Below are positions 18,383 to 20,647 of a stretch of DNA of 64,000 bases, one piece after another (the first letter of the stretch is position 1; the number at the start of each line of letters is the position of its first letter). The position numbers and the translations under genes were made by a program. Source of the stretch: Chara braunii (Eukaryota > Plantae > Charophyceae); NCBI GenBank assembly GCA_003427395.1, contig BFEA01000021.1, positions 2,244,897 to 2,308,896 on the forward strand, given 5' to 3'. The notes under the pieces are model-generated. The model was not told where the DNA came from. It made no database searches and saw nothing but the letters and a program-made list of their open reading frames with translations.

Positions 18383-20380
18383 ATGGAGTTTCACAGAGTC
18401 TGCTTATATGCATTGTTAGTGGGTGTTGGGTGTTGCGGAGCTGCAAGTTTTTTTTTTCTTCTCCGCCTCATAGACGCTATATAGAGCTATGACCAGGGCA
18501 TTTTGAGGAGTGTTTTATAATTGTTTCGCTCACAATTTTAAATAAGCATGAGAGATCACCTGGGTCTTTCGAAGCACTGTATTTTTTTGGCCTAGCGTGA
18601 TTGTTTTGGAACGTTTGTGGTCTTCTCATTTATCTCCCTAGGCGTTTTTTTATGCCTTTATGCCTACTAGAGTTTCGTCGTCTGGTTCTTTTGTGTATTT
18701 ATTCGTGAATTATCTAGTTGTCGGCTGCTTCGTTTGGGGTTTCCCGTTTAGGGTCCGTTTATGCTCATTTTTCTATCTCGTGACTGGTTAGCTTCTTTGA
18801 CTGGGCTCGTTTTTTATTCTGCTTTCGTTTCATCGTTGTTGATTTCTTGACTTTCATTAGTTTTCTCTCTACGTGGAAAGAGAGTGGATAGTTGTGAAAT
18901 TGTTTGATAATGGAAGGTGCATGTTGTTTTGGCAAGGCTAGTTGCACTAAGATGTTCCCTGTTCGGAAGGAGAGTATACCTCAACTATTGATTTTTTTTT
19001 CCATGTTGGTCGTTGAGACAAATTTCCCTGTTTTGATTGTTCGACATAGTGGTAATAGACGTTTAGTAGGGTGTTGATAAAGTTGTAGATCCTTGTGCGT
19101 TTCTCATTTATTGACAGTTTGGTGGAATTGTGATGGTCGTGGTGACGTATGTTTTCGTTAGGTTAATTTTTGAACGCTCTTTTCCATAAACTAAATTCGC
19201 TTTGTTCATATTTTATTATCATTTAGGTATGATAGTTGAGAATTTTTGTGTTCTTATCTTTGTGTGTTTCTGATTCATTAACGGTATGGTGAAATTGTGA
19301 TGGTCGTGGTGGTGTAGGTTCTCATTTGGTTAATTTTGGAATTTCATTTTCGTAAATTGAACTCACCCTGTTTGGGGCTTAAGGTCTGGTAATTAGGAAT
19401 TTCTACATTCTCATAGTGGAATTTGGTTATAGGTAGGGTAGTGTAGGGCTTTGCATGTGGGCAATCTTGTAGATTTGTTTTTTGTGAATTGACTTGGTGT
19501 GTTGAAAACTGAGGTATGTTAATTAAGAGTCTCAAAAAACTTGTTTTTGACACTAGAATTCGGGAGGTTATGCTTTGTCGGTGTGAATACCCTTACAAGG
19601 GTATTCGCCCATATTTTTGCAACTTGCACAAGTTGAACCTGAGATGGTATATAAGGTAGGTATTTACGTAAGTATTGCGCAGACCGTGACCGAATCCCTG
19701 TAGCTAGAATAACGGGCGCATGCGAGATAAGGTTAGAAGGTTTGTGAACGTGCGAGTTTAAGGCGCGAGTGATTTTTATCGTGTACCGACAGTCAGTATC
19801 CATGATTTTTTTTTATTATTTAAAATTATGATTAAAGCTTAGTTTTAGTTTGGTTATATGTAGGAACGGGCCGTAGGTAGAAGCTGACGCCAGCACAGCA
19901 AAGGTGCCGACTTTGGCGATTGGAAGCCGACCGGTAAGCCAAAATGTAGTTAAGGGGCACCTTGGTAGAACCACGTGGTGGGTACAACCTGCTTATATGA
20001 AATTTCGCTAGTACTAATACCAGTCGTGGGCCTAACACTATCAGTTACAGTGTTGGACTTATATACAATATATTTGGGGATCGAGGCCAGCGACCGACGA
20101 CGATGGAGCGTTAGAGTGAATGAAAAGATTGAGGGATTGATGGTCCACGGGGCTATCTCCCTTGGTTTTGTTGCCGAACTACCCGTGGGTCCGGTCGGTA
20201 GGACCAAGAGGGGCACCGATGGTATTTTCTCCTCAAAAACATTGTTTTCCTATGTTCGTATTTTTTATATTTTTACTTTTATTTTATTCCTTAGTTATTT
20301 TAGTTGTCGGTCTCGTTTCTGGGGCACAACACGAATATTGGTACTAGGACTATTTGCGGGTTCCAGCGAGTCTAACTCAG

Positions 20381-20647
20381 TTGAAACGCGGGCTGAGGAG
20401 TTCAATGTGCATGTTAGTTGGTGGGTGTTTAGCCTATATTGTGAGAGGGTTGAGTGTGATCATGCCTGTTGGGGCCCGAAAGCTGGTGAACAATTCTTGG
20501 GCAACGCGGGCCAAATGAAACTCTGGAGGATTCTTGCGACGATACTGATGTGCAAATCGTTCGTCGAACTTAAGTATAGGGATGAAAGATTAATCAACCG
20601 TCCAGTAGTTAGGTTCTCTCCAAAGCTACTCAGGATCATTGGAGTTG
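20381..20647 (+). pseudogene. Degenerate nuclear LSU (25S/28S) rRNA-derived segment
   Basis: TTGAAAC..GAGGAG, GAGTGTGATCATGCCTGTTGGGGCCCGAAAGCTGGTGAAC, GAAACTCTGG, GATACTGATGTGCAAATCGTTCGTC, GTATAGGGATGAAAGATTAATC and CTCAGGAT are collinear with the conserved LSU domain II. Confidence 0.85.

Follow-up and report, generated by a model that had tools for sequence, protein, structure and literature searches.

A large-subunit rRNA fragment inside a long non-coding retro-element of Chara braunii

So far, mammals have supplied most of the described cases of chimeras between rRNA and LINEs and of rRNA retro-pseudogenes. In a second group of elements, comprising SINE28, SINE3 and other 5S-derived SINEs, and Cassandra (5S), the rRNA part forms a defined module, either functional or terminal, such as the 5S Pol III promoter. 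R1, R2 and their relatives encode a reverse transcriptase and an endonuclease, and they occupy fixed positions in the 28S gene of real rDNA, away from the 28S region described here. The locus analyzed in this study lies in a 64,000-nucleotide stretch of Chara braunii DNA (the window), for which a miniature rDNA travelling as a mobile family had been proposed. Our results replace this view: what they document is a piece of rRNA carried along by a retro-element in a streptophyte alga, a finding of little importance in itself. We regard it as probable that an ancestral retro-element took up an LSU piece of ∼350 nt once and then passed it on passively.

The carrier element and its LSU rRNA pieces

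The LSU piece is hosted by a long non-coding element of 9.2 kb, here called copy 1 (17703-26919, plus strand). Copy 1 is a bona fide retro-insertion: it carries an A11 run at its 3' end (26906-26916) and is bounded by a target-site duplication of 17/16 nt (AAAATTTCCCTGCCATC at 17686-17702 and AAAATTCCCTGCCATC at 26920-26935). It thereby shows the combination by which LINE-mobilised retrocopies are recognised, a poly(A) tail together with a target-site duplication of 7-20 nt. Pfam searches of the longest copy 1 ORFs returned no family, and neither a reverse transcriptase nor an endonuclease was found among them. Between positions 17600 and 23500, outside of nested repeats, the DNA depth was 12-20, which corresponds to a single copy at a likeness of at least 80%, and the RNA-seq depth was 0, so that no expression was seen. 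The RNA reads mapped to the LSU bins match the letters of rRNA, not those of the element. One of the nested repeats, recognised by its depth and similarity, is a MITE-like, very high-copy sequence at 17861-18382 (no strand assigned), outside the region claimed as an rDNA module. It contains an internal inverted repeat, has a 90%-identical copy at 60073-60593, and reaches a summed contig depth of 130,000-365,000 compared to ∼15 in its flanks. A very high-copy short repeat is also located within copy 1 at ∼19576-19604.

The related copy 2 has a body (31595-35374, plus strand) that is collinear with positions 22756-26870 of copy 1; blocks obtained with blastn and nhmmer show ∼62% identity with E-values down to 1e-101, and the anchors between the copies follow one order on one strand. 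Comparison of the two copies revealed no frame-consistent protein similarity and no coding signal. At the ends of copy 2, no clear A-tail or target-site duplication was found. The postulated mobile family is only weakly indicated: copy 1 has its target-site duplication and A11 tail, but its depth is that of a single copy at a likeness of at least 80%. Copy 1 could instead be a one-off processed retrocopy of a long non-coding transcript locus, represented by copy 2 or by a lost relative, with the LSU scrap as old debris within this locus and no mobile family involved. Such an origin would agree with the target-site duplication and A-tail of an element that is nevertheless single-copy at this threshold, with the presence of only two relatives in 64 kb, which adjoin each other, and with the ends of copy 2. 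But at 62% identity the copies are very old, the 80% threshold would miss any older relatives, and no transcription is seen now. We therefore consider a one-off retrocopy unlikely.

The LSU pieces were characterized with real rRNA sequences. The full rDNA reference units represent eukaryotic contamination within bacterial assemblies. Two further references are partial: in L003, the rDNA breaks off after LSU ∼815 and gives way to an unrelated repeat, and L004 is a chimeric contig with an LSU content of just 100 nt. The sense fragment of copy 1 (20363-20647, plus strand) corresponds to LSU ∼640-990, in domain II, with one hairpin of ∼70 nt deleted, and is located internally, ∼2.7 kb from the 5' end of the element. 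The original prediction had placed an LSU segment at 20381-20647, and this was borne out. The Rfam model LSU_rRNA_eukarya matched positions 20398-20691 on the plus strand (93.3 bits, E = 9.5e-21), nhmmer, with a profile made from 32 real eukaryotic LSUs, matched 20439-20647 (E = 1.8e-39), and in blastn the piece was 77.7% identical to LSU 769-982 of reference L022. When aligned to the Rfam LSU covariance model, it contains numerous non-canonical pairs. The end of the Rfam match (20645-20691, model positions 1384-1449) found no support from nhmmer and was dropped as LSU sequence. An ORF of 235 amino acids that runs across the piece (19969-20673) yielded neither a Pfam family nor a homologue. 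LSU 1-640 is missing, and past LSU position ∼990 the sequence is non-rRNA. Therefore, the piece does not represent one continuous section of rDNA or pre-rRNA. We regard it as ordinary genomic debris, not as a miniature rDNA module.

In copy 2, the rRNA-derived sequence is arranged in three parts. The first part of the sense fragment (29375-29616, plus strand, LSU ∼640-846) still contains the variable hairpin that was lost by copy 1. It was detected with nhmmer (29525-29616, E = 2e-8, with an envelope of 29242-29630) and with blastn against real LSU (E = 3e-6; references L022 and L004). Rfam did not report any rRNA for positions 28600-30100, even at E ≤ 10; since Rfam E-values are multiplied by 4227 families, our own profile and covariance-model tests were used in addition. 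The LSU-like sequence claimed for 29336-29615 was hence confirmed, if at a weaker level than in copy 1. Beyond this claim, copy 2 contains further LSU sequence, in antisense at 30054-29672 (E = 3e-26) and in sense at 30094-30156.

The antisense part belongs to an insert of ∼440 nt (29617-30053, minus strand) that corresponds to LSU ∼1185-1570 (nhmmer, model positions 1185-1525, E = 3.3e-26) and includes an internal tandem duplication of ∼44 nt. On the minus strand, the insert ends in A5 (TTTTT at 29617-29621), and it is flanked by a 9-11-nt duplication (GGGCAGGGC at 29608-29616 and 30056-30064). Because of this A5 end and the flanking duplication, it looks like an rRNA scrap that was retro-inserted later. 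Copy 1 is uninterrupted at the corresponding position. The second part of the sense fragment (30054-30215, plus strand; nhmmer and alignment to L022) starts with a repetition of the junction motif at 30054-30075, followed by 18 nt of filler and by LSU 836-899 at 30094-30156 (nhmmer, E = 5e-6). Compared to L022, the sequence between two AATCG repeats is then deleted, and the fragment runs on to LSU ∼990. The resulting layout is a sense-antisense-sense mosaic, contrary to operon order. Twin priming was considered as a single-event origin of this layout and rejected, because the sequence past the A-run is LSU that continues the numbering with an overlap of 9-11 nt, and because copy 1 lacks any interruption at the insertion point. 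An LSU scrap within another LSU scrap is an odd coincidence, which we count against the explanation proposed here.

Comparison of the two copies

The LSU interval (∼640-990), its strand, and its relative position are the same in both copies. Moreover, the similarity extends beyond the rRNA: a block directly 3' of the LSU piece in copy 1 (20734-20930, plus strand) has a homologous counterpart at 30416-30599 of copy 2 (E = 5e-5 with nhmmer, 1e-6 when the search was small), and rRNA profiles have no match within 20734-20930. In the 5' direction, no homology between the copies could be demonstrated upstream of ∼20260 (copy 1) and ∼29156 (copy 2), where local alignments did not rise above block-shuffle controls and a global MAFFT alignment was uninformative. 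The best upstream match (19597-19640 versus 28959-29002) is poor evidence of family homology, since it touches the high-copy repeat at ∼19576-19604. For the sense LSU piece itself, neither a target-site duplication nor an A-tail was seen around it in either copy.

Both copies also share changes within the LSU piece. As had been predicted, TCAATGTGC(A/G)TG is present in both, while all 32 of 32 real LSUs read GAGTCT(A/G)AC at this place. Over 188 rRNA-conserved columns, we counted 12 identical shared derived states compared to 5-7 estimated under independent decay, although some of these may be host-specific rRNA states or fast sites. At one such site the host rRNA reads TGGTGAACTATGCCTGAGCAGGGCGA, which identifies the G in the CTGGGCA of the copies as derived. 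The copies are 63% alike on the rRNA-conserved columns and ∼62% elsewhere, so the LSU piece appears to decay no differently from the remainder of the element. Taken together, the common place, strand, interval, and derived changes, along with the common 3' flank, indicate a single capture that was inherited through the element. The suggestion that the piece had not been captured twice is therefore supported by our data.

Acquisition of an LSU piece by each copy independently, for example at a hot spot for rRNA retro-fragments, is by comparison improbable. rRNA scraps are indeed common in this genome: 35-45 distinct contigs show rRNA-type letters over 20549-20567, another LSU scrap is located at 41615-41668, and copy 2 has demonstrably gained one extra LSU insertion. 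But separate events would have to account for the same interval of ∼640-990 on the same strand and at the same relative position, for the homologous non-rRNA block directly 3' of it, and for derived substitutions and a rearrangement of the invariant GAGTCTAAC motif that are common to both copies.

According to the single-capture explanation, a host LSU piece of ∼350 nt (∼640-990, in sense) would have joined an ancestral long non-coding, LINE-dependent retro-element. Two routes of entry are conceivable: during target-primed reverse transcription, the reverse transcriptase may have switched templates to the abundant rRNA, or an rRNA retro-pseudogene may have inserted within the element. The piece would then have been copied passively with the element, such that it came down to both copies in the window at one common internal position, and would subsequently have decayed at the pace of its surroundings. 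Copy 2 may later have received, along its own lineage, an antisense retro-insertion of another LSU fragment (∼1185-1570) that is unrelated to the first and landed within it. Of this explanation, we infer how the piece was captured, in which order the events took place, and that function is lacking.

The 18S-like and 5.8S-like motifs

According to the original prediction, an rDNA unit or a pre-rRNA gave rise to a condensed module in the element, with 18S, 5.8S and 28S parts in collinear order, and the element represents an rDNA-derived mobile family. The quoted motifs do exist in the order 18S-like, 5.8S-like, LSU, and the plant 5.8S motif on which the comparison relied is correct, as it retrieved three genuine 5.8S genes. 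The 18S-like motif of copy 1 (19384-19400, plus strand) is nonetheless a chance-level match. Rfam gave no SSU match at E ≤ 10 in the copy 1 region, and an nhmmer profile of 32 SSUs gave none at E ≤ 10 anywhere in the window. In Smith-Waterman alignments against full SSU, the score at this motif was equalled by 16 of 200 shuffles. The same applies to the 5.8S-like motif of copy 1, an exact 10-mer (ACTTGGTGTG at 19492-19501, plus strand), whose Smith-Waterman score of 10 was equalled by 211 of 300 shuffles.

For the 5.8S rRNA, we additionally constructed our own covariance model (R1) from three real 5.8S genes, with their structure as folded by RNAalifold, and applied it with filters off. R1 is a glocal model with the artificial structure of an isolated 5.8S, and nhmmer searches and Smith-Waterman shuffles were therefore added. 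Over the window it produced only noise, with the best hit (E = 0.62) away from the claimed sites. Rfam, R1, and nhmmer all returned nothing at 19492-19501. More generally, profile HMMs from 28-32 real rDNAs found nothing at the claimed 18S and 5.8S sites.

The 5.8S-like stretch of copy 2 (28969-29021, plus strand) aligns locally, over 53 columns, with columns 93-142 of the 5.8S. Its Smith-Waterman score depends on the reference: it was equalled by 1 of 300 shuffles with L002, by 10 of 300 with L003, and by about half of the shuffles with L022. Rfam, R1, and nhmmer up to E = 1000 did not detect a match. This stretch did not prove robust and is most likely a chance match.

An operon-order rDNA module is thus absent from the element, and the LSU part stands alone. 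Its SSU and 5.8S parts fail with Rfam (E ≤ 10), the R1 covariance model, the HMMs, and the shuffles; the best value in its favor, 1 of 300 shuffles for 28969-29021, disappears with another plant 5.8S. The LSU part is present in sense, but it is restricted to ∼640-990, and in copy 2 LSU sequence occurs in antisense as well. Furthermore, LSU 1-640 is missing, ITS regions are not demonstrable, the two copies have no demonstrable homology at the motif sites, and the rRNA pieces of copy 2 are ordered sense-antisense-sense. The predicted 18S-5.8S-28S module in an rDNA-derived mobile family is therefore already largely refuted and very improbable.

Relation to known rRNA-bearing elements

A more far-reaching interpretation would be that Chara-type genomes contain a class of 6-9 kb non-coding, LINE-dependent elements that take up rRNA pieces recurrently and in either orientation, in which the LSU part is selected and no debris, and the nested insertion is targeted and not due to chance. 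If true, the LSU segment would be selected in the element RNA for association with the ribosome or nucleolus or for recruitment of a reverse transcriptase, but we give this interpretation very little credence. That the LSU piece is itself a working part of the element RNA, for example with one of these roles, is already disfavoured and extremely unlikely: although the piece was kept in both copies despite their long divergence and rRNA-derived parts of SINEs are known (5S in SINE3, 28S in SINE28), its conservation does not exceed that of the element (63% versus 62%), its helices are broken or deleted and, in copy 2, an insertion interrupts it, and it lies internally, ∼2.7 kb from the 5' end, in an element for which no expression was seen.

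With the single capture of an LSU piece as the favored explanation, the locus can be placed among the known systems. As in R1, R2 and their relatives, 28S sequence adjoins retroelement sequence. Unlike R1 and R2, the element contains no ORF and lies outside rDNA, and its LSU piece comes from domain II. As in SINE28, in SINE3 and other 5S-derived SINEs, and in Cassandra, a fragment of an rRNA gene travels in a non-autonomous retroelement and is inherited with it. Those elements are short and multi-copy, whereas the element described here is 6-9 kb long and single-copy at a likeness of at least 80%. The LSU piece is also internal, promoter-less, decaying, and interrupted, in contrast to the defined modules of SINEs and TRIMs. 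Neither of the two hallmarks of rRNA-derived SINEs, a short high-copy element and a conserved rRNA module, is found here. The ends of copy 1 are of the LINE type (A-tail, 17-nt target-site duplication) and not of the LTR type.

The locus also resembles rRNA retro-pseudogenes and rRNA-LINE chimeras. No recognisable LINE or reverse-transcriptase remnant is present beside the LSU piece, so the locus does not qualify as a demonstrated rRNA/LINE chimera of the classic kind. The fragments are internal LSU pieces of less than one kilobase in both cases (50-482 nt in the known examples, ∼350 and ∼440 nt here). As with rRNA retro-pseudogenes, they are found at a non-rDNA locus with non-rRNA flanks of single-copy depth, as a sense piece of ∼285-350 nt and an antisense piece of ∼440 nt. 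A short A-run and a duplication of 9-11 nt accompany the antisense insert of copy 2; neither feature was seen around the sense piece. The known fragments were copied by LINEs via target-primed reverse transcription, a route that we infer for this locus as well, and the carrier copy 1 shows a 16-17-nt target-site duplication and an A-tail. In contrast to the rRNA-LINE chimeras, the sense piece lies within a non-coding element of 9 kb and is not joined to the 5' end of a recognisable LINE, the host is a green alga of the streptophyte lineage, and the piece appears to have subsequently spread with its carrier to at least two copies.

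rRNA matches in the window

At gathering thresholds, Rfam returned three matches in the window. The first is LSU_rRNA_eukarya (20398-20691, +; 93.3 bits, E 9.5e-21; model 671-1449 with two large internal gaps). The second is a full-length U6 snRNA in repeat-rich DNA (2266-2379, -; 61.8 bits), and the third a tRNA-like sequence (28009-28066, +; 43.8 bits, model positions 8-63), which may be the head of a SINE and lies in repeat-rich DNA between copy 1, the LSU-bearing element, and its paralogue, copy 2. In E-value mode, Rfam found neither SSU nor 5.8S at E<=10 in 16-32 kb, and no rRNA of any kind in 28600-30100.

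Reference contigs were collected with two probes. The 5.8S motif quoted in the original prediction proved genuine and led to three real 5.8S-containing metagenome contigs; a plant-type LSU 21-mer yielded ∼95 eukaryotic rDNA contigs contaminating bacterial assemblies. One contig, L022, is a complete rDNA unit (SSU 846-2655, 5.8S 2853-3008, LSU 3236-6623). Profile HMMs from 32 SSU, 28 5.8S, and 32 LSU genes were run over the entire window (nhmmer --max), and comparison with the references identified its rRNA pieces as green-plant type. Contigs of green-plant-type or other eukaryotic rDNA occur as contamination in at least 94 assemblies of bacteria or archaea (L007-L100), such as plant rDNA in assemblies of leaf-nodule Candidatus Burkholderia. 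In contig L003 (1-522), plant rDNA breaks off at LSU ∼815 and gives way to a satellite-like repeat, and L004 is a phage-like contig that includes 100 nt of LSU; both join an LSU fragment to unrelated DNA and are probably assembly chimeras.

An 18S-like, a 5.8S-like, and a 28S-like part in operon order had been proposed for both copies. The LSU part was recovered by Rfam in copy 1 and by nhmmer in both copies, the other two parts by neither method. The SSU profile gave nothing at E<=10 in the entire window. The 5.8S profile gave two noise matches elsewhere in the window. Even at E-values up to 1000, a three-sequence 5.8S profile left the proposed sites empty, and a 5.8S covariance model built for the purpose and run with filters off returned only noise. 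In Smith-Waterman comparisons, 211 of 300 shuffles equalled the score of the 5.8S-like 10-mer of copy 1, ACTTGGTGTG, and the score of the 18S-like 16/17-mer was reached in 5/300 shuffles with partial and 16/200 with full SSU. The 5.8S-like stretch of copy 2 (28969-29021; 53 columns aligned to 5.8S columns 93-142) depended on the reference: its score was reached in 1/300 shuffles with contig L002 and 10/300 with L003, and with the L022 5.8S it was not even the best local alignment. Both parts thus appear to be absent from the two copies or below detection. LSU 1-640 has no match in either copy and the sequence beyond LSU ∼990 is non-rRNA; therefore, the LSU piece does not belong to a continuous segment of rDNA. 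On these grounds, we rejected the operon-order 18S-5.8S-LSU module.

The carrier element and its paralogue

Copy 1 (17703-26919, +; 9.2 kb) encloses the Rfam LSU match. It is bounded by a direct repeat of 17/16 nt, AAAATT(T)CCCTGCCATC (17686-17702 and 26920-26935), and ends in an A11 run, which identifies it as a retro-insertion of LINE type. It lacks any detectable coding capacity, since no Pfam family matched its longest ORFs and its similarity to copy 2 is spread over several frames and both strands, a nucleotide-type pattern. An ORF of 235 codons (19969-20673) extends over the LSU scrap and the GC-rich flank upstream of that scrap. Neither a Pfam family nor a homologue was found for this ORF, which most likely arose by chance and is of the type mis-annotated over rRNA-derived DNA.

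Sensitive blastn and nhmmer identified 28.8-35.4 kb as a collinear relative of copy 1 with ∼62% identity. Anchors pair 20327-20425 with 29313-29413, 20441-20504 with 29548-29613, 20486-20560 with 30083-30157, 20734-20930 with 30416-30599, 22756-23527 with 31595-32380, 23926-24259 with 32647-32979, and 24531-26765 with 32965-35262. Upstream of ∼20260/29156, no homology exceeded block-shuffle controls.

Over 17600-23500, we mapped sequences with a likeness of at least 80% from two DNA runs (Logan contigs) and from two oligo-dT RNA-seq runs, all under the same species label. DNA depth was single-copy (12-20) over 18388-19569, 20752-20948, 21146-21342, and 21737-22918, and enormous depth was confined to nested repeats. 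These include SINE-like pieces (around 21100 and 21340-21740) and a MITE-like repeat that contains an inverted repeat (17861-18382; 90% copy at 60073-60593), the most abundant sequence of the mapped region (summed contig depth 130,000-365,000 vs. ∼15 in unique DNA). A short stretch around the hairpin GAATACCCTTACAAGGGTATTC (19570-19610) reached ∼64,000-76,000, and contig joints tie it to the MITE ends (17859, 18194). Because this stretch overlaps the sole local similarity between the upstream regions of the two copies, that similarity may be repeat-derived rather than family-derived. The 400 nt directly 5' of the copy 1 LSU piece (19964-20357) showed 25-40x single-copy depth, with small deletions at 20265-20290 in several contigs; a modestly repeated relative is present elsewhere in the genome.

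A probable single LSU capture and a probable later insert

Copy 1 holds a single sense piece (∼20363-20647, LSU ∼640-990; nhmmer 20439-20647, +, LSU 778-989, E 1.8e-39), internal to the element at ∼2.7 kb from its 5' end, with a variable hairpin of ∼70 nt deleted and numerous broken pairs. Read against L022, copy 2 has this interval in two parts. Part one (29375-29616, +) runs up to LSU 846 with the hairpin kept (nhmmer 29525-29616, +, LSU 750-846, E 2e-8); part two (30094-30215, +) covers LSU 836 to ∼990 but lacks a segment deleted between two AATCG repeats (nhmmer 30094-30156, +, LSU 836-899, E 5e-6). A further LSU scrap (41615-41668, +, LSU ∼1891-1947, E 6e-8) is unrelated to either copy.

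Common to both copies are the rRNA interval, strand, collinear place, and a homologous block directly 3' of the LSU pieces (20734-20930/30416-30599), which is non-rRNA (no profile match). We scored 188 columns that have no gap in either copy and reach at least 90% conservation across 32 real LSUs. Both copies agree with rRNA in 107, copy 1 alone differs in 26 and copy 2 alone in 34; both differ with the same base in 12 and with different bases in 9. Independent decay would give an estimated ∼14 double changes, 5-7 of them identical, vs. the 12 observed, although site-rate variation or host-specific rRNA states may account for part of this excess. Both copies have TCAATGTGC where the real LSU context is the invariant GAGTCT(A/G)AC..., and the host rRNA read end TGGTGAACTATGCCTGAGCAGGGCGA indicates that the G of their CTGGGCA is derived. 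Taken together, shared interval, strand and place, the homologous 3' block, and shared derived states make a single LSU capture before the copies split well supported. The proposed inheritance through the element, rather than two captures, thus holds for the LSU piece; the operon-order interpretation attached to it does not.

The sense parts of copy 2 are separated by an insert of ∼440 nt (29617-30053, -), comprising LSU ∼1185-1570 followed by AAAAA on the minus strand (nhmmer 30054-29672, -, LSU 1185-1525, E 3.3e-26). It is flanked by GGGCAGGGC (29608-29616 and 30056-30064; flanking duplication 9-11 nt), downstream of it the sense sequence resumes with 22 nt that occur twice (30054-30075 and 30094-30115), and copy 1 is uninterrupted at this point. 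These sequences are most simply read as a second rRNA scrap that was retro-inserted later, in the lineage of copy 2; a conceivable alternative is that recombination between the short repeats precisely removed it in the lineage of copy 1. The 3' junction shows an imperfect ∼40-nt repeat, and the insert contains a tandem duplication of ∼44 nt (29767-29854; GGGACCGTCCCGCT(T/C)TGGCGCTTGCTGGAGGTAC(C/T)GATGG) without counterpart in real LSU. That one rRNA scrap sits within another (29617-30064) is an odd coincidence.

Expression and origin of the LSU pieces

There was no sign of a function of the LSU piece. The copies are 63% alike on rRNA-conserved columns vs. ∼62% in other blocks, and RNA depth over the unique parts of copy 1 within 17600-23500 was zero in the two oligo-dT runs. 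RNA reads on the LSU bins are rRNA rather than element transcripts, because they carry rRNA letters and are <90% alike. DNA depth over these bins was ∼7,000-20,000, the dominant letters being those of rRNA, not of the element (e.g., 20549 T>C and 20567 A>G). The rRNA-type letters came from 27-45 distinct contigs, which represent real rDNA and other LSU scraps.

LINE reverse transcriptases copy abundant non-coding RNAs, and such copying of rRNA could have produced the older sense piece. We infer this route, since neither a flanking duplication nor an A-run survives there. For 28S rRNA pseudogenes and 28S/LINE-1 chimeras in mammals (50-482 nt, 83% sense), template switching or RNA ligation is given as the cause (bioRxiv 10.1101/2025.02.02.635956). 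The antisense copy 2 insert directly matches the picture of an rRNA retro-pseudogene, and the LSU pieces of both copies are a fresh example of an already known type of genomic debris.
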